This document shows, in pieces, positions 1,033-64,000 of a DNA stretch of 64,000 bases (positions are counted from its first letter, which is position 1; every line of letters starts with the position of its first letter). Source of the DNA: Takakia lepidozioides (Eukaryota > Plantae > Bryophyta); assembly GCA_030704615.1 (NCBI GenBank), contig CM060734.1, positions 59,396,001-59,460,000 of the forward strand, read 5' to 3'. Below the pieces are notes generated by a model, which was given only the letters and a program-made list of their open reading frames with translations, was not told the origin of the DNA and made no database searches. A program made the position numbers and the translations under genes.

Positions 1033-2703
1033 TTAAGTCTGTCCTATATGTATATCCTAGATTTGACTAGTGACCATGATGCTTGATCACCGCTACTCTA
1101 AGGTTACTATCATTTAAATAGCCATGCCACTCTTGTCTACGTAGCTTATACAATCAACCTGCTATCACCTAAATCTGCATGAACGTGGCTAAATCTCCTC
1201 TAGCAAATTTCAATTGGACTACACAACATTTCGAGAACTGGAGTCCCAAAACATTTTTCTCTAAGATAATTTTTTTTTTTCTGCAAATTAGCTGTCAGGA
1301 TCGATCAGCCTTCAGATTTGATAACGGAGGCATACACATTGTTCATGTAGACTTCTCCCCTCAATTGTTGCATTCTTTTTCTCTTTTTTTTCCACTGCCC
1401 TCTCATCCACCTCTTCGTCCCTTACATAGGCCATGTCCACCGCCAAGCCTCGCAGCCTTTTCAAATGGAAAAGGGGACAAGAATGGTGCAAATGGACAAA
1501 ATCAAACCATGGGTATCTCTCGATTTCATTGTTCAGGAAATTTTCTTGTTGAAAAGTACTGCACACACAGTCAGTCATGGAGCCTTCGGAAAGAGAGCTC
1601 TCCTTGCAACACTTGCTTTTATAGTTTACTGTTGTGAAGGTTATGCAGGCTTTGGGAAAATTGCTTTGCAAATATGTCATGCACCTGTTGACTTCATGAT
1701 TCATGGCTTCACACAGGCTAGACGTAGGAGGTTGCTATAGAGCAATGTGGGAGATGGAGCCATCATAAAGAGGCGGAGATTGCTCTCTCCGATTTCGAGT
1801 GCAATCGGTTGTCCACCGAGAAGATTTGGGGCCTGCTACTAGGGTAAAACACCCTATGACCGTTATAGTTCCTATGACCGTTCATCTCATAATTGCTTGG
1901 GTCAGGCCTGCATGAGCGACCATGGCTGGGCCCAAGACTGCTCATTTTTGCCACTTGGCAAACAGTTGTTTGATAGAACCCCCAAGAAATATGAGTGGTC
2001 ATAGGGCTCAAACTTCACACAAGCATTCGGATTTCAACTTTGAAACCCCATAACTTTGTGTGGATTTCATGAAATCAGGCACTTCCAAATGTGTTGGGAT
2101 GCCCCAGATGTGGGGCATCTTATCAATTTATCCGGGGTAAAAACGACAAAAATTCACCGTTAGATCTTCCGCCATCTTTAGATAAACGGTCATAGGGTGT
2201 TCTACCCTACCGTGGGCCCAAATTTGTGATGCTTTGTCCGCTGAGGTCGCAAGTAGATAGATGTTATCTAGGGTGGGCACATTTTTATGCAGTGGAAAGT
2301 TGCCGCCTTCCAACTTCCCCCGCCGTCTGGCCTCTGGCCTCTGGCCCACCCTCAAGTACTTTGCGGTATACGTAAGACGTAAGCAAGGTGGCAGCGGGAA
2401 GGTACGAGAGCATTGATGAGGGCCCACACATTTGGACATGTTTATTAGACTTGGAAGCAAGCGGGCAGGTGGATAGATCTGAGAGTTTCGAGATCAGGGC
2501 CCTGATGGAGTGGAAAGAATCCGTCTCTCTGAGTTGTGGCATTAATAAGTGCTGCTATCAGCACCGTGAATTGACATCCTGTTCCCAACTCTTCTTCTCA
2601 AGGTAGCCCTTCGTTCAATCGGATTACTGCGATATAGAAAGCCAAGAGGTACGACTCAGCCTGCCAGTTGGTTATCGGTTCAATTCACTTGAGAACAGAA
2701 TCC

Positions 2704-5700
2704 ATGGCGGAAAATGTCCTGACTTTATGCAAAGAGACTATAGATTCAGCCGAGTACCTCACTTCAACCGAGAACGAGAAAGATTTGCAGATCAACAGGC
2801 AACAGTGTAAGCTTCTGGCAAGGAAAGTCTCAAGAATCCAAGCGACAGTAGGCAAGATCCGTGAAATCTTATCTGAAGAAGGAAGTGCCAGTCGTTTTCA
2901 TGCTGCAGATTACTGGGAGCAGGCCATCAAGGAGCTGTGTCGCGTACTGAAAGCTGCCGAGGCACTAATCAAGGATTGTTGCTGCAATGATCGGTGGCTG
3001 AAAGTAGCGATCAGGCAGGGTGACAAGAGGGAAGATTTTGCGGAATTGTTGCACGATGTAGACTGGTGCACTTCAATTCTATGCGGCATTTTTTTCGAGC
3101 AAACCTGTCAAGACACGCTGTATATTGATGCACGAATGTGCGGGGGAAGACTTAGCATCACTGAATCCTTCACTCTGGAGGCAGCGGCAAAGGACGACCT
3201 AGACAGCCTCAAGGCCTCTTTGAAGCTCCTGAGAGACGATCATGTTTGCATGGAGAGCTGCAAGCAACTCAACCAAACTGAGCAATGTCTTGCAACGCAG
3301 TTGTTGGGGAAATTGCAAGCCCAGGCCTTGCCAACCAACCGAAGTGACGTGGATACATCTCCACTCATTTTGTGGGCGAACGCTGGAGAGCTTGATGAAG
3401 GAATTAAGTTAGGAGAAGGTACGATGGGGAAGGTGTATGAAACTATTTGGGGAGGAGAAAAGTACGCAAAGAAGAAGTTTTTAGGCACGAACAGCTCATT
3501 GTTTAGGGAGGAGGTGGCTGCTCTAGCGGGACTCGATCATCCGCACATTATGCGACTAGTTTGTTGCACTCCGAGCAATCGTGATACCATCCTGATGGAA
3601 TTAATGGACAAGGACCTTCATGCCCTATTGGAGGACAGATCCGGCCCACTTTCGAATCTTCCAGCGGTTGACCTCATGCTGCAGATCGCCGAGGGGATGA
3701 AATATTTGCACGCCAAAAGCATCGCTCACCGTGATCTTAAGTCATTTAACGTTCTTGTCAGATTCGCAGATCTTCCGGCTTCTCTAGGAGAAGATGCGCG
3801 CCTGTACGCAAAGGTAGGTGATTTCGGCTTGTCAAAGATCAAGAATGCGAGTACCAGATACTCACATCAGACACTCGATGTAGGTTCCAGACAATGGAAG
3901 GCTCCGGAGGTTTTTAGTGTGGAGGATGAAGAAGATCATCCTAGCAGGTTTCACCCTCTGAAAACAGATGTTTACAGTTTTGGGATTGTCTGTGCTGAGA
4001 TACTGGCAGGAGAGGAGCTATTTGGAGGGTCTTTATATGGGCTTCAGAGGAGGGTGAAGAGGGGTGAGAGGCCAAAGCTGCCGGAGAGTTGTCCAGCCAG
4101 GTTGGCTTTCTTGATTAAACACTGTTGGGATGGCGACCCTCTCTTGAGACCTGATTTCTTAAAGATTTGCAGAGAGCTGAGATACATCAAATGGCTCCTT
4201 CTGAAAGGTTAGTGACCGTCATGTTCTCTTGATTCCTGTGAAATTGCTTTCAGAACCAGATATGTATAAGCTTTCTTAAATAATGGACACTAGTTCAATC
4301 GACAAGAGTCCCTGGTGAAAATAGTGAGGGAACTCTACAAAATGATCATCTTGTGCTCATCTTCTTCATTCAATCTTGAAATAGTGATGCACGGATCCAT
4401 TGCCATGAGCAGTAGATTAATGTGGAAATTCTGAAGGCTTTGATAATTGTTTATACTTAGGACCTCTTAGACTTGGATTTTCAAGAACTGCACCAAACTC
4501 CAAAGCAACCATTCTGAATGTGTAAGCTGTGACATCTATGCACCACCTGACCACTTCCCTCCACCATATGGTGAATGATCAACATTAAAGGAGTGACAAC
4601 AGAGACCCTGAACTTACACAGTGAACATATAGTTATTTATCAAACTGCTGACCTTAGTCACGTCCTTCTGATTTCTATGATTCTACAGATGATGAAGTGC
4701 AGCTGGAGAAATTAGATCCAAATGCTTTTCATACTAAAGCAGTTCAGGTAGGTGAAGACAACGAAATTTTATTTCCCTGGGAGTATTCACATTGGTCTCT
4801 CAACATTGGTAGATAAGATTGTAGTGTGGGACTTATGTCATGGAACTTTAGAGAGCAGGTCTGGATTTTTGTTGGGGCATTCAACTTGAATGCCCAGTCT
4901 TGCCATGTGCAGCATCTCAACTTACTGCAGTCTTTCTTTTGGTGATGTGCATATGCACATCCCAAATCACCAAGTTCTGTACATGTTGTTGCATTATTTC
5001 TTGCCCTTGCTCCCTCCTTGTGTCTATGTGTCTCTTCAACCAAGAAACATTTTAGATGTTGTCAAAGGAAAATCTCAATAGAAGTTGATATCATAGTTGT
5101 GATCTCTATGTTGGTGTATTTTATATCAGGTACAAGGTCCTTGGGGAGGTGGAGGTGGAGGTGCTTTCTTTGATGGTATTGCTACATCGGTCAGAGGGTT
5201 TGAGCTCAAATTTGATGCCTGCATATGGTCTATCAAGGTGAAATATGATGTCAATGGAACAATATTCGAGGGTCCACGTCATGGTTACCACGATGGCAAC
5301 CAATTTAAAGAGGTTTGAGTCTTACTTATGCTCCAATTAGAAACTTACTGCAGAAGCATTCCCAGCCATTCACCTTTCTCTTTCACCAAAACCTTCATCC
5401 CATCTCATTTTTCTCCTCATTACTTGTGTACGGATTGATTCAGTTTTCCTTGTTGTAGCGGTATGCGAGTCAATTCACAATTTACGTACGTTTTGGAGAT
5501 GTCTACCGAGTGGCAAACTTCAGAGAGTATGCAATGGTATATGGCACTAAAAATACCTCTAATTGTATCTGCAAATGGTGTTATCTTTCTACATGTGCAT
5601 AGTATGGAATCATCTTGCATGACATTCAATTGCTGAAGGAAGAGCCTGGAACAGGTTTCAATCCTAATATCTTGATTGGATAATGCCCCTAAGTGTAGCT

Positions 5701-19645: not shown

Positions 19646-21120
19646 TTACCAAAGCACTACCAATAGTTTGGAAACGAGTTCTACAAAAGCAGCAGGTTGT
19701 GCAAATGACGTATCCAGAGACGAAGACACTTGCAAATTAGCCTCTAGTGGTGCTTCAACTTCTAGCTCTGAATTACTGGTAGTATTCAAGAACTGACTTG
19801 TTGGAATATCACTATCGACTTGTGACTCTAGATGTGCTTCTACTTCCAGGTGTGAGAGATCAGGCATGTACACATCATTGATATCTATCACATTCTCATG
19901 GAAGGAGTTTGTGATTACAGTAGCCTCACCATCCCTACCATGCATTGAAGTTGAATCCATAGACAGCAGCCTCGCCACCGCATCTTCTTTGTCACATTGG
20001 GATGGCCCAAAACACCCGTCCATGGCACCAACGTTGATGGGCCATATGCTTGTCGTTCTGAATCCAGCACGAATATTTGATGGGGTCAAAGCACTTTGTA
20101 GAGCTTTGCTAGCAATAGTCGCTAGGTGCTCTTTTTCCACTTCGCTTCTATGTTGCGTCATAAACAGACTGCGCTCTTGCTTGAAATATCGTTTGAAAGG
20201 CCCAAAACACGCAACATCCAACGGTTGAAGCTTATGGGAAGTGTGTGCAGGAATTGTGAGGATATCAAGTCCCATCCTTGCAGCTTGTTCTATGGTTGCT
20301 TCTGAAACGTGGCTTGAATGATTATCTAAAATCAACAGGTGACGATTAGTCAATGAAATCCCACTGGACACATTTCGTTGAAAATGAGACAACCAATTTG
20401 CAAAGAGCTCTGCTGTCATCCACGCTTTTGTCCGGGTTGCGATCGTTGCTCCCACTTCACAATCTGCAATGTAGTTTCTTCTTGGTATGCGAGATTTCCC
20501 TTTGAATACATAGAAATTGGGCAGTGCATGTCCAAATGCACTCACGCAAAGACAAAATCATCACCCACTCTCAAGATTTTGGCAGAACCCCGTACACGTC
20601 TCTAGAACCTTTCCTCGCCAAGACTCTCATGCCTAATGTGCGGCCTGCTTGTATGCCCGTTTCATCAGTATTCCAAATTTGACCAGCTTCATAGTGCTGC
20701 TCTCTCTAAAACGTCGGCCAAATTTGAATAGAATGGATTGATCATCCCTACATACATTCAATGCACGACTTCTTTCCAGTCCTTCGGCTGTTCTCATCAC
20801 CACTTCTAGATGTATGAGTTGAAACCTCTTCCACCATGTTCGACCAGGATTCCCGTTGGTGAAGTATATGGTCTGTTAGAAACCAAAGCAGCGACTCTAG
20901 ATTTTAGCATTGATAGAGTAACACACATGCCGACATGTTGGGCTCGTATGATCCAAGAGACGAGGTCTTTTTCTTCTTCCGTCGTCAATATTGTTGGTGG
21001 CCCAGATTTCTTTGACATGGTGATGCCGTCCAACCATCTTCTAATGCTGGAGACTGGAATATGAAATTTTTGTGCTGCAGCTCGAATAGAAGGCAAATTT
21101 TCATCCTCCACTTCGGCCAC
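19646..21120 (-). mobile_element. pogo/Fot1-like (Tc1-mariner superfamily, DDE_1/CENP-B type) transposase, frameshifted
   Basis: psq-like HTH SIRAAAQKFHIPVSSIRRW; CENP-B-type HTH LTTEEEKDLVSWI; WNTDETG near 20660-20680; LLILDNHSSH; IPAHTSHKLQPLDVACFGPFK. Split across frames. Element ends not identified. Confidence 0.85.
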
Positions 21121-32600: not shown

Positions 32601-35160
32601 CTTACCCTGGAGCATCCACGCTCACATTAGCAGATGGTAATTCAAAAAGTTGTTGCAAGTACTGCGGAGTAACTTGTATATCTATGCCCTTCACCTGGGT
32701 AACTCCTGTCATTGGCTTGAAGTTCTTGATGAACTGGATCATCAAATCCCGATGATGCAAATACCACTCTTTGCGCAACAATCCCTCCAACCGCAACTCC
32801 TTCAGCAGCTGCACTGCCTGTGGTGTGACGATTGTTTGCCTCTGTAGAATTGTCGTGCTCTTCACTCGGAGATCCTCCATCTCTCTAATTCGCTTCATTC
32901 TGGACAAACAAGAAGGCCTTGTTTGGAATAGCTGTAGGAAAGCTTGTAATGCGTACAGCATGAAAGTGTGATTAGCACAGAATGGAACAGACAAGTGGCT
33001 GTAAGCCTCCGGGGCTTGCAAATAGTGAGTGAGAGAGAAAGTACTTCCGGCCCGTCCAACCTTGCGTCACTGCGTAAGAAGTAAAGCTAGTGTATAGTCT
33101 GTGATATCCGCCATAGCTACAAAGCTATAGCTTTGATTGCCCCTCCCGTCGAGACACTGGTTATCCGGAATAACACCTATTCTTCCACTCATAATCTTCC
33201 TCTTCATCTGAATTTTGGTCATATTATCTGCTGCATCCGCACATACTTCTTCCACATGATATAGTTCATGTTTCCTTACTTTAATTGAATCCTCCAATTC
33301 CATTCTCCTTCCTCTCCTGTTGAAAGGCGTGATAAGTGATCTGCCACAAGATGCAAACATCCAGGCTTGTAAACAACTTTGAATTCAAACTCATGCAAGA
33401 TAATCAACCATCTTGCTATCTTGTCACTTATCAAGGGTTTGTTCACCAGATAAATCAAGGCCTGATGATCCACATAGAACATAAACTTCCTTCCTAGCAA
33501 GTAATGCCTGAACTTCTTGACTGCATAGATCATTGCCAAAGCTTCTCTGTCAGTAGTGCTATAGTTCCTTTCAGCACTGTTCAACAATCTGCTAGCATAG
33601 TACACAGCTGAATCTATGTTTCCTGTGACATTTTGGGCTAACACAGCTCCCGAAGCTTCTCCCAAGGCATCACAGTGTATATGAAATACCACATGCCAGT
33701 GAGCGTTAATCAACATAGGTGTAGTTGTTACTGACATTGTAAGTGTCTCAAATGCCTGCTGGCATTCAACTGTCCATGCAAACACTGCATCCTTCTTCAA
33801 AAGCTTGCTCAATGGTGCTGCCATCTGTGCATACCGTCTGATAAACCTTCTGTAATAACTGGTTTGTCCAAGGAATCTCCTTGGAGCCTTAATATTTACT
33901 GGTGGATACTTTAATGGCCTCAGTCTTTCTAGGATCCACAAATAGTCATTTCTTACAAACAATGTGTCCCAGTAGTACCCCTGAGTTCACATAGAAAGTA
34001 CACTTTTCTAGATTCAGACCAAAACCTTTCATCCTGCATCTGGCCAAATGTAATTCCAACTTCTGCAAGTGCTCATTCTTAGAGCTGTATACACTGAAGT
34101 CATCTAAGAACACTTGCATGAATTCATCCAAATACTCATGGAAAGATTCACTTATCACTCTCTGGAAAGTTGTTGGTGCATTACAAAGTCCAAAAGGCAT
34201 GACTTTGTATGCATAAGCACCATAATCTGTGATGAAAGTAGTCTTTCCCTAGTCTTCTTCAGCTACTTGTACTTGGTTATACCCACTGAAGCCATCCATG
34301 AATGAGTACATCTCATGGCCTGCCACAGTGTCCAGTACAGCTTCTATGAATGGCAAAGGAAATGGATATTTCTTTGTACAATCATTCAACTTCTTATAGT
34401 TCACACAAACTCTCAGTTTGCCATTCTTCTTGGGAACTATCACAATGGGTGATAGCCAAGTTGTATACTCTATTGGGTATATGAACTTAGTCTCAGCCAA
34501 CTTCTTAATCTCCTCCCCAACCTTCTATGCATAGTTGGGATTCACCCTGTATCTTGCCTGTTTGATTGGTACTGACCCTGGTTCCAGTTCAATCTTATGC
34601 TGGCAGATCTCAAGTGGTATCCCTTTCAGATCTTCATAGCTCCAAGCAAATACATCTTTATATTTGATAAACAAGCTCTTAGCTTCCTCAGAGAATTCTG
34701 GCTCTAAGTTAGCCCCAACTTTCACCATTCTTGGTTCCTCCTCAGTTCCCACATTAACTTCTCTCACCTGCTCTTCAGTTGTGATTGTCCATCCAGCCAC
34801 TACTTCATCCTGTAAACTCACAGTGGCTGGTTCCTCTAAGATTTCCATTTCTCCCTCTCTTTCTTCATAAAAATGTGGTGGGTAGCTGTTTGTTTCCCCC
34901 TCAATTGGTGTTGCTGTTATTGTACCACAATATATACCCTTTAAACAACTTAGTCCTCCCAGTTGCATTTCTGCAACTTGCTCCCACTCTGGGTGTGCAG
35001 CAAATAGAGTAGAATCCTGCTCTTCATCAAGTCCTCCCCTCCAGTCACATTCTCTGACTCCTCGAGATCTTCTGGTAGCAGGTAGCCTACTAGATTTCTT
35101 AGTGGTGACCTGTATCTTTTGCTTCCCATCATGCACAATCAGTAACTGGGAATTCCAGTC
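29630..35160 (-). mobile_element. Ty3/gypsy LTR retrotransposon remnant (5'-truncated; RT, RNase H, extra 3' ORF, probable 3' LTR)
   Basis: RT: WLSPIVIVPKKNGKLRVCV, MDGFSGYNQ, MPFGLCNAP, FLDDF (34500-33946). RNase H: HCDALG, ERNYSTTDREALA, VDHQAL (33962-33276). Integrase core absent. Probable LTR ~29630-30053 (TG...CATCA on minus) after a purine-rich tract. Confidence 0.85.
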
Positions 35161-35925
35161 ATGGAATACCCACTACAATAGATCGCGGTATATCTGACTG
35201 TCGAGCCGCGGTAGTCGTGATTTTCGTGACTTTCACCATGACTTCCATGTATTTTTGGACCAAATGGGGCTTCACGTAGTCATTGAAATGACTTTGTGAC
35301 TACGTAGTCGTCCGGAGGAGTATGTTGGTAGACGTCGTCATGACAACATGGCTCCGCACGAGACGGAAGGGTGGTCAACGATGATTGACCAGCGCGAGCT
35401 TGCCACCAATAGTCGCCGGAATGAGTCTAGATGAAGGTGGATGTTTATCACAGTCATCCCAGTCACTGTAGATTAAATAGATGAATGTGAATGGATGATA
35501 TATCATATGCCATTCAGTTTGACCGTCCGTTCATTCACATGATTCACAGGTTTAAGCCAAGTGGTTGCAGCACTGTGATATCACACAGGATTGACACCAT
35601 GGCCGTTTTTTGGGATCACTTTGCATATAGAGGCATCATTGTTTGCTACATGGTCGTGCTCCAAAGGGAAGCGGCCATTAACCGCATGAATGGTCAGGTT
35701 GTGAAAGGCCGTTGTGGTATGAATATGGGGCGCCAAGGTTTAAAAAAAAAAAAAAACGTGTGGGAAAGGCAGGATCTCCAATCGTTGGAGGCATGATTGT
35801 TGAAACAAGGGCCAAAAGGTATGCAAAAAAATAAAGCAAACTGACTCTCTTGGAAGACAGAATGCACGTTCCCTCTGCAGATGTCGTTCTCACACAGTCA
35901 TTTCCTGATAACCGTTCCCTGTGAA

Positions 35926-36313
35926 TGTTATGACGGGTTGTGCCAAGCTGTGTCGGGCTGTGTCTGTGCCGAGCTGTGACTAGCTGTGTCGGGCTGTGTC
36001 GGGCTGTGACAAGCTGTGTCGGACTATGATAGACTGTGATAGGCTGTGATAGACCGTGATAGTCTGTGATAGACTGTGATAGGCTGTGACTGACTGTGAT
36101 AGGCTGTGATAGGCTGTGTAAGGCTGTGACTGACTGTGTAAGGCTGTGTGAGGCTGTGTCTGACTGTGTGAGGCTGTCTACTACCCCTAAGGCATGTGTC
36201 TGTCACCCCTAAGGTCTATATTGGTTTGAGTCTACCACCGTAGGTCTACGCAAAATTAAGGGTACCCCACAAAACCCATAAAACTGTCTAAGTCCTCAGA
36301 CAACCCTCTAACA
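35926..36313. repeat. LTR-like insertion with ~10-bp GGCTGTGA(T/C)A tandem repeats
   Basis: TGTTA...TAACA ends; decamer repeats at 35935-36180 resemble those at 60640-61500. No TSD. Confidence 0.5.
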
Positions 36314-36314
36314 T

Positions 36315-37146
36315 ACTGGAGAGCCGGGTTTTGGCTTGGCGGGGATGCTCCTGGATGACGGTGGATGTATGGTGGTCCTTGCCACAAGAGGGAAGACCAC
36401 AGAGAATGTTGTGGCAAGGTGGACACCGAAAAGTGCCAACCCGGTCCTCCTCAAAAAATGGTTATGCATCAATACGCAGGGGTTGCGAACAGAGGGCCAG
36501 AGTGTAAGTTATCAATCTATTACCTTCATTTCATATCGTGGTGTATCTAAACTAGACCTTGGAGTTGATCCCTCTTTTGTTGGATGTGCAGACATTGATG
36601 TTTGAGGCATATTGTTTTGTGAAGAGAGGGTCTACGTTCAAATTCTGCAACGACGGTCGTCTTGTTGATGCCGCTGTGGACCCTGTTACCTACAATGTCC
36701 TCTACAACTATGTGCCCCACTCCAGTATGCCGAAGGACACAAAGATAGACAAACCGTGGCGGGTACGGCCGGACCCGGAGCCCTGCTTTCATCCAAACCC
36801 TCATGGAGACGTGCTTTGATGTCCAAGGGCGGATTATTGACCTCACATGTGGCACGGGTAAGCTTTCATGTGCACAGTATGTCCCTTGGCCCGATTGCAA
36901 TTGCATGCCGCATGCTACTAACCGCCCGCTTTGTCCCTCAGGTGCTTCAATGTGGGCTGGGACGTTGTCCGACAGGCATGTCTTCGCCTTCGAGCCAGAT
37001 ACTGCCCTCCACAACTCAGAACTAGCAGTGGCTAACGTCTGCCGAAAGAGGAAGAGACATCCTCGGAGGATGAGGAAGAATCCGAGAAGGAGCAGGGGGA
37101 GGTACAAGTTGGGATCGAGGCCGAGGAGCCCCCGGTTTACGAGTGA
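36315..37146 (+). pseudogene. DNA amino-methyltransferase (N4-cytosine/N6-adenine, beta-class-like) gene remnant with two spliceosomal introns
   Basis: Introns 36504-36591 (GTAAGT...TGCAG) and 36858-36941 (GTAAGC...TACTAAC...CTCAG). The spliced product reads FGLAGMLLDDGGCMVVL...KKWLCIN...TLMFEAYCFVKRG...KPWR/RSPAFIQTLMETCFDVQGRIIDLTCGTGASMWAGTLSDRHVFAFEPD, then an acidic tail. Frameshifts near 36765 and probably near 37040; the N-terminus is missing. Confidence 0.65.
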
Positions 37147-37777
37147 GTGGTCGCATTGTAAGTTGCCTCCTGATTTCGTGAGGCACCTCCCATCGCTCTC
37201 TTATTTGGCTTGATGGTCGGTTGAATCCTCTGTGGGTGAAAGAAAAGCTAGCTGCTTTCATAACACAAGGTCAATGACAATGTGGTGAAGGTACCTTCTT
37301 CAACATATGTCAGCCTGTTTTGCGGCCCGCTTATCAGTGTCCTCCCTAGGTTTCCGTGTTGAATTAGTTAGCTCGCTAGGTGGACCTATGGTGGTTTGTA
37401 GTGATTTGACATGTTACTGGCAATGTGGCAACATGAAAGTATCAAAAAACAGATAAAAGAGTCAAGGAGAAGCTTTGGAATAAACATTTCTCGGAACCCA
37501 GTCAAGGGTGAGACAATCGAGGCAGAAAGATGAATACCTGTTAGATTACAAAGAGAAGCAAACAACAACATGGAATGCAAAGCTTTGTTGGAAATTGTCA
37601 TTCTCTCTCTCCCAGCACATTTTTGAAGTCTTTGAAGCAATTCAACATAGGAACTAGTGCGTGATGAGGAGGGTTGCTTGCTAAAACGAATCTAGGCTGT
37701 CATTATCAGCTGCTAGCAGCAATGCGAGGATATATTCATCGTTTGTGTAGAGGCAGTGATAGCTGAAGGAGCAGGGA

Positions 37778-40160
37778 TGGAGTGTGGGTCCAGATTCATC
37801 CAAGAGGGCCGGATTTCAAGCACAAAATTACCTATGATTCACTGTGGATCTATAGCTACGTCAAGAAACCTGCATGGGTAGATGGTCAACTGGAAGAGCA
37901 ACACAGCTGATGAAATTAGGCACCTCGACCATGACCATAGCTTCTGGAAGAGGACCAAGAGAGGGAGTCCACAATGCCTCTTCTGGCACTTCTGGGCATG
38001 TGAGGATGCTATGCAAGGCAGTGCCACTGACAGAGGCTCTACAGACTTTAAATGAAGGAGACATTTCAGCAGATGCAGATACTTATATCTGTCTCCTGCA
38101 TAAGTGTATCAAGGTGAAAGGCCTGGAAGCTAGAAAATAGGTGCACGCATGCTCACATTATCCAAAGTGGATTCAAGCCAAATGTATTTCTTCACAACAC
38201 CCTTGTCAACATGTATGTTAAGTGCGGAAGCATCATGGATGCTCACCGAGTGTTCAACATAATGCCTCAACGATGTTTGATCACGTGGAATATAATGATG
38301 GCAGGATTTATCAAGCATGGGTGTGGTAGGAATGCTTTGGAGATATGAGCAAATGATGCGGGAAGGGGTGAGGCCCAACCACATCACGTTTGTTTGCGTT
38401 TGCAATGTGTGTGCGAGCCTGGCAGCCTTGGGAAAGGGCAAAGAGGTCCACGGTGACATCATCAAATATGGAACTGTACCAAATGTTGTTCTGAACACTA
38501 CCCTGATCAAAATGTATGCCAAATGTGGGAGCATCAAGGCTGCGAAGGGAATGTTTGACAATATGGCTGAACGAGATGTGGTGTCGTGGAACATGATGCT
38601 CGTAGGATATGCACAACAGGGGCACGGGATGGAGGCTTTGGAGACCTATGAGCAAATGATGTGGGAAGGGGTGAAGCCCGATCACATCACGTTTGTTTGC
38701 GTTTGCAATGAGTGTGCAAGCCTGGCAGCCCTGGAAAAGGGCAAAGAGGTTCATAGTGACATCGTTAAAGCTAGGATTGTACCAGATGTCATTCTGAACA
38801 ATACCCTCATGGACATGTATGCCAAATGTGGGAACATTGAGGATGCGAAGGGAGTATTCAATAATATGGCTAAACGAGATGTGGTGTCGTGGAACGCTAT
38901 GATCACCGGATATGCACAGCTGGGGCGCGGGATGGAGGCTTTGGAGACCTATGAGCAAATGATGCGGGAAGGGGTGAGGCCCAACCCCATCATGTTTGTT
39001 TGCATTTGCAATGTGTGTGCAAGCATGGCATCCTTGGAAAAAGGCAGAAAGAGGTCCATGGTGACATCATCAAAGCTGGAATTGTACCAAATGTCATTCT
39101 GAACAATACCCTCGTGGACATATATGCCAAATGTGGCGGCATCGAGGATGCAAAGGGAGTGTTTGACCATATGGCTGAACGAAATGTGGTGTCTTGGAGT
39201 GCTATGATTGCAGGATATGTGCAGCATGGGTGTGGGATGGAGGCTTTGGAGACCTACGACCAAATGATGCAGGATGGTGTGAAACCCAACCACATCACCT
39301 TCGTTTGCATTTGCAATGCATGTGCGAGCCTGACAGCCCTAGAAAAGGGCAAAGAGGTCCATGGTGACATCGTCAAAGCTGGAATCGTACCAAATATCAT
39401 TCTGAACACTGCCCTTGTGGACATGTATGCCAAGTGTGGGGGCATCAAGGATGCAAAGGCCGTGTTTGACCATATGGCCGAACGAGATGTGGTATCATGG
39501 AGTGTTATGATTGCAAGATATGTGCAGCATGGGCGCGGGATGGAGGCCTATGAACCTATGAACAAATGATGCAGCAAGGAGTGAAACCCAACCATGTCAC
39601 ATTCCTTTGCGTTTGCAATGCATGTGCAAGCGTGGCAGCCCTGGAAAAGGGCAAAGAGGTCCATGGCGACATCGTCAAAGCTGGAATTGTACCAGATATC
39701 ATTCTGAACAATACCCTCGTGGACATATATGCCAAATGTGGGAGCATCGAGGATGCAAAGGGAATGTTTGACCATATGGCCAAACGAGATGTGGTGTTCT
39801 GGAACACGATGATGGCAGGATATGCCCAACATGGTTATGATATGGAGGCTCTGCAACTAATGGAAGAGATGCAAGTGGAAGGCTTGAAGCTGGACAATAT
39901 CACCTTTCTATGTGTTCTCTCTACATGTAGCCATGCTGGTCTAGTGGATGAAGGCAAATACTACTTCCACTCCCTTAGCCAAGATCATGGCATTACTCCA
40001 GCAGTGCTCATGGTGGACCTTCTTGGCCGTGCGGGGCGATTGGATGAGGCAGAGGATTTCACTAAGAAGATGCCAATTTAATCAAATGCTGTGGTTTTGA
40101 GGGCCTTGTTCGTGCCTGCAGAATCCATTACAATGTGGAAATGGCTGAACGGGCGGCATC
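37778..40160 (+). pseudogene. PLS-class pentatricopeptide repeat (PPR) protein pseudogene with partial E domain, no DYW
   Basis: Repeated P-L-S triplets (VVSWNAMI.GYAQ.G.GMEAL / HITFVCVCN.CASLAALEKGKEVH / VILNNTLVDMYAKCG.IEDA) with ~303-bp period. P2/L2/S2-E motifs: TFLCVLSTCSHAGLVDEG, MVDLLGRAGRLDEAE. Stops at ~38138 and ~40079, and frameshifts near 38300-38340, 39045 and 39560. Start approximate. Confidence 0.85.
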
Positions 40161-42464: not shown

Positions 42465-45200
42465 CGCTGGCGCATGGCGGCGCCATTCGATCCCGCCAAG
42501 CGGCGGGACGTGGAGAGGCGCCGCCCGAAAAAGGTCATAAAAAACAGAAAAAAAAATAAAAAAAATCCCATGTGGCTGCGCCATGTGATTTTGCCACGTA
42601 GCGCGACGGGGACAGACACCGCCATATATATGAAGAAATCTTGGTTTGTGGATGAGACGTTGGTTGCGTCCATAATGGTGCACACATGACATACCATTAT
42701 GGTGCTCTATAACTGTGTTTTTTCTAAAATTAATAGTGGTCATTCTTTTTTGGTTCCTACTTAAGAGGGTCATCCCATATGTATGCTCATTTGCAACATG
42801 CCGTCCAAACTTAGAGTGGAGAGCAAACTGGAGTACTGGCGCGAACGTCAACAACAAGTGTGATTTCAGGTTAATGTTGGGGTGTTCTAAGGCCACCAAG
42901 AACATGGCTCGACCCAATCGCTATGGTAACATACAGTCAGCGACCTTGTCGCTCTCCTTGCTCTTCTTTTTCCTCTCCTTCGAGCTCCTCCATGCTCTGT
43001 CTACTCTTTGGGACCAACAAAAGGCGCCGATGGAGCACATCTTCCCGATAACCACCACCTAGAGTCTCTCCTTCAGCACTACCATTTGGACGTACCTAAC
43101 TCACATGCCTCATACACACAAGAACAACCCCCGGAAAGCATTTGACGGACGACCGCATCTCGTGAAGTATTCCCAACCCTAGAGTTCATTAGGAGAGTTC
43201 GCAGCTGCTGAACTAGAACGACCCCACGCACGCAGCAGCAAGCATTTCGCCTTGGCTTCGGCGCCGTGGAGCTAGCAACAAATATAAATCTACCAAGTAA
43301 TACCAACCTACCTATCAAACAATACAAACCTAGCAAATAGTACCTACTAACCTACGTACATTCCACTAGTATAAGAGGCTTACGCCTCCAATTTGAGTTC
43401 ATTTCATATGGATTACTGTAGCAGTTCGACCTCTCAAACTCATGAAGTTTCAACAAAACGCGTACAACATAGCTCAAGGTATGTTTCTAATAACACTTCT
43501 ACATATATTATCTGCAAGTAGAAGATGAGGAGATAGCGTACGCAACACCCCTATATTCCTGAAATATCTTACATTTCGTAAATATGTCCAAATCTTAAAC
43601 CTTAAACCCTAAAGAGGTCGTTGCGTACGCAACACCCCCTTAGTCAACATGTATTATTATTAATTTTTCATTTGACAAGGGGTGTTGCGCATGCCCATAT
43701 GTTCGACAATGCTCTTTCTTCCCTTTTTATATTCTCCTTATTGCAATAACATACAATGACATAACACAAAACAATATAGCACATTGGCAGCTAGTGCAAA
43801 ACTAGAGACAATGCACTGTGCGTAGCATGCAAAGAGGGAAGGGGTGACGTTCAAAGCATGTACAGTGCAGGTGGCAAACGGAAGTGTAGGCGTAGAATAG
43901 ATGACCGTCTATGGCGAATGGAAGAAGCTTATGCCACAAGGAATGGACATACAAAAATGCTATGCAACTGCGATGAGTGTCATGGAGGAAAAGTACTCTT
44001 GTTGGAAACAGTGAGGAATCATTACATGATACACGGGAGAGATCCTCTTCTCCAACGCTGTTCTCTTCCGGTAAGATCGTCACTTTCCCTTCAGCACTTT
44101 AGTTTGAATTTTGAATGCAACGATCATCTTCTCTATATGTCGACATTTCGTTGGGTGATTGTAGTCAAGAAGTCATAAGATACAGACGTGAGTATGACTA
44201 CGCCACTTCCGTTATCACTTTAATTAATGCACATGTCGTGTTTTCATTGGTCATGTGTAGTCATGTAGTCATATATGACTAAGTAAGTGACTGCAACTAT
44301 GACTTCAATGGTTACAAATGTCGTGTTTTGATTGGGTGTATATTCATAAGATACATACGTAAATATGACTGCATCACTGCAACGTCACCGTGCCTCCTAT
44401 GTCATAATATGAACAAGTGTCACATCGTTGTTGGTCCACTCACAAGATGACTATTGTGATGCAAGGATGTGAATATTCAGACGATGAAGACGAAGGCCCT
44501 GCGGCACAGCGGGAGCCCAATGTCACAATCCACAATGCAAACTGTCACTCCAAGTTTGGACGGCGTTGCAAATGAGCATTCAATGGTCTATCATGTGTGC
44601 ACCATTATGGACGCAGCCAACAATCCAAAAACCAAGATTTTTTCATATATATGGTCGCGCTTGTCCCCGTTGCGCCACGTGGCAGAATCACATGACGCAG
44701 CCACATGTTTTTTTTTTTTTTTTTTTTTTTTTTTTCCGAGCGGCGCCTCTCCGCGTCCCGCCGCGTGGAACCGCCATGTGCCACTGAAAGAAAATCGTTT
44801 TGGGTTTTAATTAATTAATTAATTAAAACTACTCTTATACTCTTATTATTGCAATAACGTATAATAACATAACGCAAAACAATAAAAATCCACAATGCAA
44901 ACTGCAGGCTATTGCATATGCAACACCCCCACACTAACCTGAAAGCACACTTGTTGTTGACGTTCGCGCCAGTACTCCAGTTTGCTCTAAGCATACATAT
45001 GAGTGACCCTCTTATATAGGAACCAAAAAAAAATGACCACTATTAATTATAGAAAAAACATAATTATGGAGCACCATAATGGTATGTCATGTGTCCACCA
45101 TTATGGACACAGCCAACGTCCCATCCACAAACCAAGATTTTTCATATATATGGTGGCGCCTGTCCAGTCGCGCCACGTGGCAGAATCACGTGGCGCAGAT
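42465..45200. repeat. Dispersed repeat present in inverted orientation (42465-42887 vs 44921-45200, plus partial copy 44540-44785)
   Basis: CAAACTGGAGTACTGGCGCGAACGTCAACAACAAGTGTG and ATCTTGGTTTGTGGATG...CATAATGGTG...ACATGACATACCATTATGGTGCTC recur as reverse complements. Confidence 0.8.
43858..44070 (+). mobile_element. CACTA transposase-associated Zn-binding domain fragment
   Basis: MLCNCDECHGGK...ETVRNHYMIHGRDP fits the C-x-C-x2-C...H pattern at CACTA transposase N-termini. It is followed by a GTAAGA donor-like site and GTAGTC/GACTA repeats. Confidence 0.5.
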
Positions 45201-47011: not shown

Positions 47012-47667
47012 TGTTGTGCGCATACATATCGCTACACAACTACATCGCTGTCTAAAACCACACAACACATGTGCACACCAAACACTAGTCTATCACTAGT
47101 CCACCACTAGTGCACCACTAGGCTGCCACTAGCCACCACTAGTGCAGCCACTAGTCCATCATAATGATAAAGAAAACAATGATACAAGCACACAAGCTCT
47201 CTCAAACTCACATACTTGCACATGAAACATCATTCATATATTAAGTTGAGCCAAGTGCACCCCACGCCATGGGGAATCCACACTACGGCGCCATAACTAA
47301 ACGCAGTGAGGCTCAACTCGAAAAAGATGAGCCCACCGCGATCTGTCGTGAAGATAACAACGTCAGATGCCCAAACATGTATTGGCCTCTGGATTGACAC
47401 TTGGGTCAATCCCAAATGTCAATATATAAAAGCTAACTATTTCCTAGCTAACTTCACACTAGTGATAAAATAACTTGACAGCTGTCGTGCGCATACATAT
47501 CGTTACTCAACTACATCGCTGTCCAAAACCACACAACATATGTGTACACCAAACACTAGTTTATCATTAGTCCACCACTAGTGTACTACTAGGCTGCCAC
47601 TAAACAACCGCTAGTCACCACTAGTGCAGCCACTAGTCCATCACTAGGCTGCCACTAGTCCATCACA
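47012..47667 (-). repeat. Nested LTR fragments: short LTR copies 47012-47163 and 47483-47667 flanking a piece (47164-47480) of a second LTR family
   Basis: TG(T/C)TGCGCATACATATCG...CCACTAGTCCATCA(C/T)A occurs twice, with a further partial copy on the opposite strand near 27800-27868. 47230-47480 is the reverse complement of 58776-59030. A PPT-like TAGGGGGGCGCT precedes the 47667 LTR start on the minus strand. Confidence 0.75.
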
Positions 47668-58775: not shown

Positions 58776-61700
58776 TGTCAAGTTATTTTACCACTAGTGT
58801 GAAACTAGCTAGGAAATAGCTAGTTTTTACATATTGACATTTGGGATTGGCCCAAGTGTCAATCCAGGGGTCAAGGCAGATTTAGGCCCTGGAGTGGTTA
58901 TCTTCACGGCAAGCACGGGAGGCTCATCTTTCTCGAGTTGAGCCTCACCGCGCCTAGCTATGGCGCCGTAGTGTGGATTCCCCATGGCGTGGGGTGCACT
59001 TGGCTTGACTTGTATTTGAGTGATGAGGTTATATATGCATGAATTTATGCTTCAGCTTTGTGAGCTCGCATGAGCTTGTGCTTGTATTCTTCTTCTTTAT
59101 CACTCGAGAAAGATGAGCTCGTATCTGTGAGTGCCCGATACGAGTTAGTTGTAGCACTTGTGGTTTTTGCTTGAGAATGAGAGAAACCAAGTTGTTATGC
59201 AAGGAGCACCGTGGAGCTCTTGGTTGTTAGAAGCGGAGGCGATGTGGGTTACGAGGTAGTAGACCTTGGCATTCGATCTTCAGCTTCATTGATGATAGCA
59301 CCATGCTGCAGGTAATTCCAGAGCACCTTGATGGTTTCAGATTGTGTACATGCATGAGTAAGCACGATTGGGAAGAGGACCAGTCAAGAGCAGGTTATAG
59401 TGGCTTTGATGGCAAAGCTGAGAACTGGACTTGGGAATGCGAGCTTTCATTGTGTGAAGGATTGCAAGACCAAGTGAAAGGGCTGATTTGGCTTGGGGCA
59501 AATCAGTGCACTTTGTGGAGTATGGTGAGATTGGGTTTCAATCTCGAGCTTCAGCATTGAGAGGGCTCTTGTCATGGCAAGAGCAGGGCTGGAATAGGAG
59601 CTAAGAGGTGCGGCAAGGCCATGGAATGTGTACCTAGGGTTTCAGAGCTTGGAAGAAGAGCTCTTGCACCACAAGAGAAGTGTCTTGTGGCTGGAAATGT
59701 AAGCCTTAGGGTTTCAGGAGCTTGGCAAAGGCTGTGGAGTGCTTAGTCTTGTCTTAGAGAGCATCAAGGAGCCAAGGAGCCAAGATAGGGGGCCGATATC
59801 TCTTGTGTGAAGAGGTTGCATGTGTGGAGCATGTATTCAGCTCATTGAAGCTTCCATCTTCAAGCTTGGAGGGCAAGCAAGGAAGAGGGAAGGGCTGACT
59901 TCCCTTATGTGAGGGCAATGCATGTGTGGAGCATGCTATCAGCCTGGTGAAGGCTTGCACTTTCAGGTGTGGGAGTGCAAGAAAGGAAGGAAGGGGCTGG
60001 TTTCCCTGTAGGGCATGTGGAGCATGCTTTCAGCCTGCTGAAGCTTGTATTTTCAGGTTTGTGGGTACAAGAAATGAAGCAAAAGAGCTGATTCTCTTAT
60101 GGTGAGAGTGGGGCATGTGTGGAGCATGCCTTCATCCCATTGAGGCTCTTGTTTTCAAGCTTTAGAGAGCTAGAACGGAAGGTCTAGGGCTGGTTTCCAC
60201 TTGGAGTGAAAGAAAAGCACTTGTAGGGCCTATGTGAGTTGGGGTTTCAACTTCAAGCTTGAAGGGAGCGCAACTCTTGAAGCAGCAGGTGTAGGGGGCT
60301 GGAATAGGCTCTAAGACAGATGCTATGGCCAAGGAGAGTGCTTGAATGAGTGCTCACAAGGGCTGGGAACCAGTAGGGCTTGGTTGTTTGCCATTGAGTT
60401 TAATGGCGTGTTTGGGGAGGCTAAGTGAGAAAGAAGGCTTGGTTTGTGGCAACCACCTCATGGCTTATGGCTACTATGGTGGTGTGTGGGAGCCGAAAGA
60501 GCAAGAATACCTTGCTGATTTCCTCACAGCCGCCATAGCTCGGTGGAAAGAAGCCTAGAGTCCAAGAGACACAAACCCTAGCTTGGCGTGGCTAAACCCT
60601 TGGAAAAATGGCTAAACTGCCAGAGCGGCCATGGATGGGGCTATGACGGGCTGTCCCTGTGGCCTTGGGGGCTGTGACGGGCTGTGCCGGTGGCCTTTTG
60701 GGGCTGTGACGGGCTGCGCCAGTGGCCTTCGGGGCTGTGACGGGCTGCAAGGGGCTGTGCCGGTGGCCTTCGGGGCTGTCACGGGCTGCGCCGGTGACTT
60801 TCGGGGCTGTGACGGGCTGTGAGGGCCTGTGCCGGTGGCCTTCGGGGTTGTGACGGGCTGTGAGGGCCTGTGACGGGCTGCGCCGGTGGCCTTGGGGGCA
60901 GTGATGGGCTGTGAGGGGCTGTGCCGGTGGCCTTTAGGGGCTGTGACGGGCTGTGTCAGGCCGTGCCTAAGGCCTTGGGGGCTGTGAGGGGCTGTGGCGA
61001 GCTGTGATGGGCTGTGACAGGCTGTGCCCAGTGGCCTGTGAGGCTGTGACGGGCTGTGAGGGGCTGTGTCAGGCCGTGCCTGAGGCCTTGGGGGCTGTGA
61101 GGGGCTGTGACAGGCTGTACCAGTGGCATGTGGGGTTGTGACGGGCTGTGCGGGGCTGTGACAGGCTGTGCTCAGTGGCCTGTGGGGCTGTGATGGGCTG
61201 TGAGGGGCTGTGAGGGGCATTGACAGGCCGTGCTTGAGGCCTGTGGGGCTGTGAGGGGCTGTGTCAGGCCGTGCCTAAGCCTTTGGGGCTGTGACAGGCT
61301 GTGCCCGTGGCCTTTGGAGCTGTGATGGGCTGTGCCCAGTGGCCTGTGGGGCTGTGACGCTGTGCGGGGCTGTGACAGGCTGTGCCCAGTGGCCTGTGGG
61401 GCTGTGACGGGTTGTGACAGGCTGTGGCGAGCTGTGACGGGCGATGAGGGGCTGTGACAGGCTGTGACCAGTGAGCTGTGTGGGCCTGTGCTGGTCTGTG
61501 GTGGCCCGTGTTGACCTGTGGACGGCCTGTGCTGACTCGTGGAGGCACTGGTGGACTGCCTAAGGACTGGCATGTGGTCTTGAAGGCCGAATTTTGAAGC
61601 TCGTGGAGGGCGGTTTGAGGAGTATCTTCATGATATTCCCATGGTCATGCAAGTGAGGGAAGAGAAGAGAGGAAGAGTGTTGGGATGAGGGCATGCTGGG

Positions 61701-64000
61701 GTTAGGCATTGCTTTAGCTTCTCTTCCTCGTAGTTTCCACCCTCTCATTAGGCCAAGACCTTTCCGTAGGTGGAGGCAAGAGTCAGTCCGGGTTTGGGCT
61801 GGGGTGTCTTTGCAGGAGCAACACCGTGGAGTTGTTTTTGGTGTGGGGGAGTCGTCGTTCTGCTTGACTGTGCGCCATGCTAGTTTTGTGTGGGCGCTTG
61901 TTTTTATAGGTGATTGGTCCGGATTTGATCACCGGCCAGTCCTAGAGCATGATGTCGATGGTGAGGCTGGGGTGATGACCAGCCAACCATAGGAGTGCTT
62001 GCGGTGGATGCAAGTACATGTGTAGGCTATGTTAGGAACTTAGTATTCCAAACCATGAGCCGCAACAGGTTCTCTACCCGGTTACCTTGTGGAGAGGGGG
62101 TTAGGGACATGTTCATGACCGGTTGAGTGTCAACACGGAGGTGCCACTAGTTGCTGGGGACAGTGCCGGTTCGAGCACTAGCGATACTAGTGGGTACACG
62201 AGACGAGGTATGCGGTTTAGGCCACCTTCACCTCCTGTGTCTTCTACGAAAGGTTCTGATTCGGATTGTGAATCAGGAGGACTCATACCGGCGGTGCAAG
62301 TTGTTTCTTTGCCATTGTTGTGGGACACAATGGAGGAGATGTATGGAGCTACCAAGGGGCCACGAAGGTACTCTGGGGCGGTGGGCACCATCGAGTTGGA
62401 TGATTTTATCCAAGAGTTTGATAGTTGGTGTGATTTGCAGCAAATGCGCAGTCCACAACTATTTACGTCTTTCATGGCATGGAAGGGGATGTTTCAGCAC
62501 CTTGAGGGGCCGCCTATGGATGGTTACCACGAGTTCAGGCGGGGGCATGAGGTTGAGATCGAGGAGTGGAGGATGTACTGGTCACCCGACTATGTCTCCA
62601 TCACTAGGGGCACTAGAGCCACGAGGGCAGTGGCTACACTTGCCGCTGCACCGGCAGCTTCAGCAAGTAGCAGTGGGACTAGTGGGACTGGTGGTACAGT
62701 AGCTACGACGTCCACCCAAGCCACTACCGCACCAACACTAGCACCCGTGCCTGCCTTCAACCCTGTTGTGGAGTTCTTCGAAGAGTTGAGAGGGAACTAC
62801 CAAGGGGTGAGGACAGAGAAGTTGCGGAGCTTGCAAGAGTTCCAACGGAAGCCGACCGAGAGCTTGAGGGAGGCTTTCACTTGCATGAGGCACTTGATAA
62901 ATGTAACCCAAGGGGTTACGGAAGCTCAGGCAGTCCAATTCTGGTATGGGATATTGGACAAGGAGCTGAGGAGAAGGGTGCGGGATGCAACTCTCCTATA
63001 AGCGGCCCAACCCACCTTAGCAAATGTGTTTTTGCTGGCAGAGCGGATAGAGCTCAACATGGTGGAGGAACGAGTGGTCATGATCGGATTTGCTAAGGAG
63101 ACACCACGGGGTAGTGGTGCTCCTAGCCAACCACTACCTCAACGTGCTCAAGGCAACAAGGGGGCTCAGGTGAAGCTCAGGGAAGGGCAGAGAGGACCTC
63201 AGATGCAGGGGTCTCTCCTTCATTTGCTGGCCAACAACGGGCAGATGTGGTGTGCTGGACATGTGGAGGACCCCATGTCAAGAAGGATTGCCCAGAGGGA
63301 GGCAAAGGGCCGGCACATGCACAGCCTGCACAGTTGCAGTGTGGGCATTGTGGCAAGCACTGGCATGGAGAGGCCCAGTGTTATGGTTTGCATCCTGAGT
63401 TGCGCCTAGGCCAGTTCCAAGGGAACAATGGTGACCGGGGGCGAGGTGGAGCAGCCCAGAGAGGACGAGGTGGCCAGCCACGAGGTGCAGGCCAAGGGCA
63501 AGCTCAACATGGCCAAGGACGCGGAGGTCAGGGTGTTGACCAAGGCATGGCCAACCGGCTTCAGCAGCTAGAGCAGAGGCTCACTGCAATGGCTACAGCT
63601 CAGGTGGTACCGGCTCTAAGGCCGGATGGTCCACCTCCTGCTCCTGAGGGAGGAGATATGGGAGGCATGGGATTCATGTGTGGAGCAACACTACCACTAG
63701 TGCAGGTGGAGTTTGTTGCAGCCGTGACTCGAGGAGCAGCACGAGTTCCTGAGCCACGAGGTGCAGAGGTGGAGTTGGATCCACAGCGTGGGGAGGCAAG
63801 CCGTCAGGCTAGGCTTCCTCAGTCATTCACATTGGCGGAGACAGTGTCGACGCCATCCATGGCACCTAGTTCTCGCCCGACTGTTATCGAGGCGGAGGTT
63901 ACTATGCCATTGGGGAGAGCTACACGGGTAGCACCACTACCTAGTGTTGCCAAGGCTACGGCAGCTAGTGTGCTACTAGGAGCGGCCACATCTGTGTGCC
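58776..64000 (+). mobile_element. Ty3/gypsy-type LTR retrotransposon 5' part (LTR, long repetitive leader, gag), running off the window
   Basis: LTR start TGTCAAG at 58776, homologous to 47230-47480. Gag-like ORF 62123-63001 (IELDDFIQEFDSW, LQEFQRKPTESLREAF) continues past a stop to zinc knuckles CWTCGGPHVKKDC and CGHCGKHWHGEAQC (~63250-63390). Confidence 0.75.
60640..61500. repeat. GC-rich minisatellite of ~10-bp GGCTGTGACG/GGCTGTGAGG units in retrotransposon leader
   Basis: Dozens of GGGCTGTGA(C/G) units interspersed with GTGGCCT(T/G) units. Confidence 0.9.

Follow-up and report, generated by a model that had tools for sequence, protein, structure and literature searches.

The window, by which we mean the whole 64,000-nucleotide stretch of Takakia lepidozioides DNA that was analysed, contains at 36314-37146 a dead copy of an intron-containing gene that is present in high copy; the copy is truncated at its 5' end and comprises the rear two-thirds of that gene. 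The copy lies between two inverted 8-mers, CACTACAA from 35171 onwards and its reverse complement TTGTAGTG up to 37403. To the left of the 8-mers, a Gypsy pol gene (RT and RNase H; minus strand, 33276-35170) is cut at 35170 by a CACTA end. To the right lies a frameshifted PPR gene (37950-40081) of five 303-nt units, the upstream DNA of which forms a repeat family that shows high depth in the presumed RNA runs. For this part of the window, positions 34700-37900 were compared with the public sequencing runs X1, X6, X7 and X8; X1 is DNA and may derive from the source sample, and X7 and X8 are presumed to be RNA, which is a guess. The features of the interval, including the exons of the putative methyltransferase (MTase), were as follows.

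35171-35465, plus strand: CACTA-type left terminus in the Gypsy pol gene, with CACTACAA and subterminal AGTCRY repeats in both orientations; CpG-rich
35466-35853, no strand: low-copy non-coding spacer with an A-run; summed X1 depth of 83-207 over 35449-35769 and no depth in X6-X8; lacks any notable ORF
35854-36313, no strand: distinct repeat in high copy, containing a GGCTGTGAC-type 10-mer array at 35934-36177
36314-36503, plus strand: MTase exon A, 5'-truncated, with motif V-like YW, VI-like LLDDGGCMVVL and VII-like KKWLCIN; one extra base at 36329-36336
36504-36591, plus strand: intron 1, GT-AG, 88 nt; removal deduced from the start and depth of X7 contig 20
36592-36857, plus strand: MTase exon B, with VIII-like FEAYCFVKRG, a variable region, X-like RSPAFIQTLM and motif I IIDLTCGT; extra base at 36761
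36858-36941, plus strand: intron 2, GT-AG, 84 nt; absent (spliced) from X7 contig 20
36942-37146, plus strand: MTase exon C, with helix A, motif II RHVFAFEPD, a III-like helix, the acidic tail and TGA; base missing at 37033
37225-37290, no strand: segment assigned by depth ratios and contig joints to the PPR-upstream repeat family right of 37403
37396-37403, minus strand: second CACTACAA 8-mer, with 0 AGTCRY and no TSD; a candidate right terminus at most

Gene model and introns

In an earlier note on this DNA, three ORF fragments had been joined through two canonical introns, and both introns were confirmed in the window sequence. Intron 1 begins with GTAAGT, ends with TGCAG and lies in phase 0, while intron 2 begins with GTAAGC and ends with CTCAG. 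The TACTAAC branch point that had been reported for intron 2 is present at 36916-36922, with the acceptor 20 nt away; the same motif was counted five times in the whole window, both strands included. All of the motif peptides that had been quoted were recovered in the same order, from LLDDGGCMVVL, KKWLCIN and FEAYCFVKRG through RSPAFIQTLM and IIDLTCGT-G to RHVFAFEPD, followed by the acidic tail, which ends with a TGA at 37144-37146. The SAM-binding motif I (IIDLTCGTG) and the acidic motif II (RHVFAFE) are in register over intron 2. This intron splits the last Gly codon of DLTCGTG, as had been claimed; the further claim that the motif is thereby hidden did not hold, since the intron is stop-free and in frame and DLTCGTG can be read without splicing. 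A 186-aa ORF runs antisense to the MTase exons (36547-37107), and nothing marks it as a gene.

Splicing, lesions and the gene family

Contig 20 of the presumed RNA run X7 joined 36592-36856 straight to 36941-37149 and thus had intron 2 removed. Its match starts at the intron-1 acceptor (36592), and its depth of 20.9 recurs at 36336, so that exon A appears to be part of this contig too; we infer that intron 1 was removed from it as well. X7 and X8 also hold an unspliced, more diverged subfamily over 36461-36827 (40 differences, 26 gap letters), which points either to intron 1 being retained or to DNA in these libraries.

Both X7 contig 20 and an unspliced multi-copy X6 contig (depth 195) are without the extra base at 36761 and possess the base that is missing at 37033. 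These two frameshifts are therefore lesions of this copy, which carries a third at 36329-36336, and the copy is dead, as had been reported, with three private frameshifts. Because contig 20 is spliced and free of two of them, a spliced, at least partly open paralog exists. Upstream of 36314, the gene copies of X6 run on into other DNA, and an X6 loose end lies at 36330. Since these copies continue upstream with different DNA, the copy in the window is cut at 36313/36314; the N-terminus, and motif IV with it, was lost at the position that the earlier note had given.

The summed contig depth over the exons in X1, which is not a copy number, was 3-7 x 10^5, whereas contigs identical with the unique spacer reached 50-80. 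Each exon variant was carried by dozens of distinct, diverged contigs, and the gene family is therefore large. The RNA/DNA depth ratio in the MTase exons was very low (0.0001-0.002). The run contigs support a real, apparently transcribed, spliced and multi-copy gene family, and in this respect the description of the gene as eukaryotised was borne out.

Identity of the encoded protein

Judged from its sequence, the protein very probably has the permuted fold of a beta-type amino-MTase. Among the ESM Atlas neighbours of the C-terminal ORF, PF01555 (N6_N4_Mtase) was present in 23 of the 30 nearest clusters (0.90-0.91, top 0.91, recognition 2567), with shared-feature counts of 148-154 compared to the 170 typical of true members. 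A beta-class profile was derived from 89 phage beta-class MTases, and its ungapped blocks were scored separately against all six frames of the window. Block VI ranked 6 of 66,746 (p 9e-5), block VIII 197 of 76,260 (p 3e-3), block X-I 5 of 38,612 (p 1e-4) and the helix A-II block 26 of 53,823 (p 5e-4); block VII was not significant in this scoring of the window. The order of the blocks is that of the beta class, and their spacing was 55 aa from VI to VIII (median of the phage MTases 52) and 28 from X to helix A (median 28).

The blocks were also combined into a splice-aware chain of four, for which the strict rules (block distances as in the phage proteins, and no introns other than GTRAG..YAG) were fixed after the locus was known. 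In this strict chain the locus was the top site of the window on either strand, scoring 15.26 against a null maximum of 14.67 (0 of 150 shuffled windows), and the catalytic-side blocks precede X-I-II, which close the domain, as in the beta class. A four-block chain with loose gaps was not significant, its score being reached by 53 of 60 nulls. The protein stops ∼70 aa past motif I, too early for the remainder of an unpermuted fold to follow; so short an end past motif I is found in the permuted class only.

Database searches were run with the separate exon pieces. No match to any of them was obtained in Pfam (pieces of 27-136 aa), in PHROG, among PDB sequences or in viral, metagenome and GTDB contigs and phages, and the protein-database homologue search by exon piece, with a length window that left out full-length relatives, was blank. 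The locus was not found by hmmsearch with an HMM of the 89 phage beta-class MTases, and local alignments of each exon to phage beta-class MTases were no better than shuffles. AlphaFold prediction of one piece, run without an alignment, gave a pLDDT of 39.5, too low for use. Several candidates were rejected: the three protein-representative matches (MucBP, YHS, BNR) are repeat proteins, the AEP-like Atlas matches of exon B alone had low recognition (1438), and EPPVY of the acidic tail, considered as a gamma-class motif IV, does not have the form xPPY and lies two residues from the end of the protein. The beta-class call of the earlier note is thus supported in its layout by the Atlas, the blocks and the chain, and found no curated-family or sequence match; PF01555, against which the note had proposed to check the peptide, was seen in the Atlas neighbours and not in the Pfam search of the separate pieces.

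The gene could instead encode another class I SAM-dependent MTase (gamma-class HsdM-like, RNA, protein or small-molecule), or bear a chance likeness to one, and be an amplified captured host fragment. The absence of sequence relatives of the exon pieces from these searches would agree with this, and the sole match in a curated library was the NCBIfam trans-aconitate MTase, a class I small-molecule enzyme (E 0.012). Motif I IDLTCGTG occurs in real class I MTases and is common in small-molecule ones, and the matches of a DNA scan for it were bacterial class I MTases or chance frames throughout. However, a rival profile, for which small-molecule MTases sharing IDLTCGTG were used, showed no fit to the flanks of the motif (p 0.36 and 0.70), whereas the beta profile fits them. 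The top local match of the X-I piece was a gamma-type protein (L228, E 0.005), but it had been selected for the motif. Motif I is located near the C-terminus, where strands 3-7 cannot fit after it, beta-type blocks VI and VIII stand upstream at the right spacing, and the Atlas indicates PF01555. An MTase of another class, or a chance likeness, was considered very unlikely.

The two 8-mers and the DNA between them

The positions of the two 8-mers agreed with the earlier note, which had taken them to bracket one element. CACTACAA was observed eight times in the window, with 2.7 expected, and the chance of a partner within 2.3 kb is ∼13%. The inverted identity between the two ends stops at 8 bp. 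The lack of a TSD, conceded in the earlier note, was confirmed, the flanking triplets being ACC and ATT, and the remaining six CACTACAA sites of the window likewise gave no TSD pair. The flanks are unrelated, with Gypsy pol on the left and PPR upstream DNA on the right, and the 5' half of the interrupted Gypsy element was not found past 37403.

The left end looks like a genuine CACTA end inserted in the Gypsy element. Contigs matching Gypsy pol stop at 35161-35171 in three runs. The first 300 nt of the end contain 10 copies of AGTCRY, the maximum of the window (mean 0.44), for a motif chosen with the end already in view; when 6-mer repeats at the left end were tested without this bias, the result was not significant (127/1000). 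At the right 8-mer, subterminal AGTCRY repeats number 0 compared to 10 at the left. In favour of a real boundary, the matches of two low-depth X6 contigs begin at 37405, one base away from the right 8-mer. A TnpD/TnpA transposase ORF was not seen in 35171-36313, among the long ORFs of the window that were scanned or beside the gene; non-autonomous CACTA copies do not need one. A 30-nt stretch at 35415-35444 that resembles exon A (E 0.13) was attributed to chance.

Because the spacer and a different high-copy repeat intervene, the left CACTA end is not joined to the MTase gene. The GGCTGTGAC-type array of this repeat (35934-36177) is ∼68% alike to a second one at 60640-61500, which precedes a gag-like ORF at 62123. 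Other copies of the repeat pass through 36295-36313 into non-MTase sequence, and 56 loose ends of X1 are located at 36295. On the other side of the gene, the similarity within the MTase family ends at 37162-37191 in three diverged contigs. The RNA/DNA depth ratio was 0.09 at 37262 (RNA 1660, DNA 18,216) and 0.05-0.12 at 37482-37530 (at 37482, RNA 1969, DNA 18,516), which is some hundredfold off the ratio in the MTase exons. In addition, 37250 is connected to 37465, and 37321 to 37691, by contig joints. The DNA before the right 8-mer therefore belongs with the PPR upstream repeat, to which it is tied by depth and contig joints.

The stretch 35171-37403 is most simply read as several fragments piled up and joined through deletions, and not as one element. 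In order, it would consist of a CACTA left end in Gypsy, the spacer, an unrelated retroelement-like array, the MTase fragment and PPR upstream DNA. The alternative is one internally deleted CACTA element with the MTase, its TSD lost via an adjacent deletion that arose from alternative transposition of the right end. A left end that appears true and sits at the Gypsy breakpoint, two X6 contigs that begin one base off the right 8-mer and the occurrence of PF01555 genes in Plavaka elements of the EnSpm/CACTA type would all fit a single element. The missing TSD, ends that match over 8 bp only and a right side without subterminal repeats argue against it, as do the foreign repeat that separates the left end from the gene, the depth and joints that link 37225-37321 to the PPR region and the end of the family similarity before the right 8-mer in three contigs. 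A single element was therefore regarded as unlikely, although it keeps an appreciable chance. The claims that the 8-mers bracket one element and that the locus shows a CACTA element carrying an MTase were not upheld; a foreign repeat lies between the left end and the gene, and 37225-37530 is tied by depth to the PPR region. The best explanation of the whole is a dead MTase fragment of beta layout in a pile-up, from a family that would be a transposon accessory gene, and we assign it a probability of roughly 0.7.

Other features of the window

A foldback-like element at 42496-45140 has several inverted arms of 61-137 nt (82-96%) and GCCACGTGGC palindromes. It also contains 8-9 AGTCAT/ATGACT repeats at 44170-44450, a motif that it shares with the CACTA left end. 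An LTR-like sequence is present twice in opposite orientation (47243-47480 and 58776-59011, 88-91%), and one of the two adjoins CACTAGTCCAC 11-mer arrays. An ORF at 2668-4212 encodes DUF1221 (HeLo-like) and a kinase. On the minus strand, a DDE_1 transposase ORF of the pogo/Tc1 type (19646-20545) is unrelated to the MTase locus.

Proposed role of the family

The MTase family is most readily understood as an accessory gene of a DNA transposon, of the CACTA and/or Mutator type, as in algae; such a role would fit because of the high copy number, decay, introns and low expression. For the family as a whole, apart from this locus, a link to CACTA may exist. By analogy with Plavaka PAG2/PAG3, Ectocarpus Sola1 and VANDAL, a transposon with an intact copy would express the protein, which would bind repeats of its own element and use its Rossmann fold and SAM to flip target bases. 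The flipped bases might then be methylated to 6mA or 4mC, for which the chance appears a little below even, or, with a slightly smaller chance, merely be occupied by a catalytically altered protein. Either methylating or occupying them could shield the element from 5mC silencing. The copy at 36314-37146 itself does nothing. The full proposition, that a land-plant CACTA family expresses an active intron-containing beta-class MTase and writes 6mA or 4mC on its own elements against host silencing, is at present improbable. If it were true, a plant genome would contain a high-copy source of 6mA/4mC marks.

We also considered that this copy may be a pseudogene of a domesticated 4mC writer of the host, similar to Marchantia DN4MT1. 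DN4MT1 is a beta-class enzyme of a seed-free plant, and spliced paralog transcripts exist here; but DN4MT1 is represented by two tandem genes, whereas the exons here recur in dozens of diverged contigs, with a summed depth that is very high, unlike the one or two host genes of DN4MT1 or N4CMT. The very high repetitiveness, the many diverged subfamilies and the low RNA/DNA ratio fit transposon cargo, and an annotated relative was not found. A host writer is thus the most improbable of the readings considered, and a transposon accessory gene is preferred.

Comparison with known systems

Blocks VI, VIII, X, I and II follow each other in the same order and at the same distances as in the bacterial and phage beta-class amino-MTases, phage ParB-MTase fusions among them. 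Motif I is DLTCGTG in the protein described here and DPFxGSG in theirs, and the introns, the acidic tail and a score below hmmsearch significance set the protein further apart from them.

Two eukaryotic host systems were compared. The Marchantia genes MpDN4MT1a/b, two sperm-specific host genes with TSPPY, methylate genic CG (10.1101/2021.02.12.428880). They share with the present family the beta-class motif order in a seed-free land plant, but the family here is highly repetitive and the motif IV region is cut from this copy. Bdelloid N4CMT is a single allelic pair with SPPY and a C-terminal chromodomain, and it silences transposons (PMC8885841). It, too, is a eukaryotic gene that has spliceosomal introns and encodes a permuted PF01555 domain; the present family differs in its acidic tail and high copy number, and its likely role is the opposite.

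Two further systems are algal transposons. The Plavaka element (EnSpm/CACTA superfamily) of Bostrychia moritziana carries PAG2, in which PF01555 is combined with SET, and modification of the element's own DNA or chromatin was proposed by the authors (10.1101/2025.02.11.637652). As a PF01555-type DNA methylase domain that is cargo of the CACTA superfamily, in high copy and with mostly degenerate copies, PAG2 would resemble the present family. Compared by description, it differs in its red-algal host, the SET fusion and the ParB-2OG oxygenase PAG3 alongside; here, the MTase domain is followed only by the acidic tail, with no SET before the stop at 37146, and the N-terminus is lost. The Ectocarpus element Sola1-1_Ec32 has a gene of 1104 aa for ParB and an N4C/N6A methyltransferase (PMC12477816). 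It belongs to a brown alga and to the Sola superfamily, and the N-terminus, where ParB would sit, is cut from the copy in the window. For the algal elements, the authors proposed that the proteins bind and modify the element's own DNA (PMC12477816; 10.1101/2025.02.11.637652).

The closer precedent is thus the algal transposon accessory MTases, and not the host genes DN4MT1 or N4CMT. A land-plant report of a transposon-borne amino-MTase was not found in the literature searched, which was itself limited in coverage, and the algal transposon amino-MTases have been described by domain prediction alone. The locus in the window is a poor exemplar, as it is dead, cut before the catalytic motif and has unmatched ends. 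The family itself would be a land-plant member of the kind known from red-algal Plavaka and brown-algal Sola transposons. If a land plant has such a family, spliced and in high copy, the range of this kind would include the embryophytes; the family would also provide an anti-silencing mechanism that is distinct from VANDAL and open to testing, and would suggest an entry route of 4mC/6mA writers into plant genomes.
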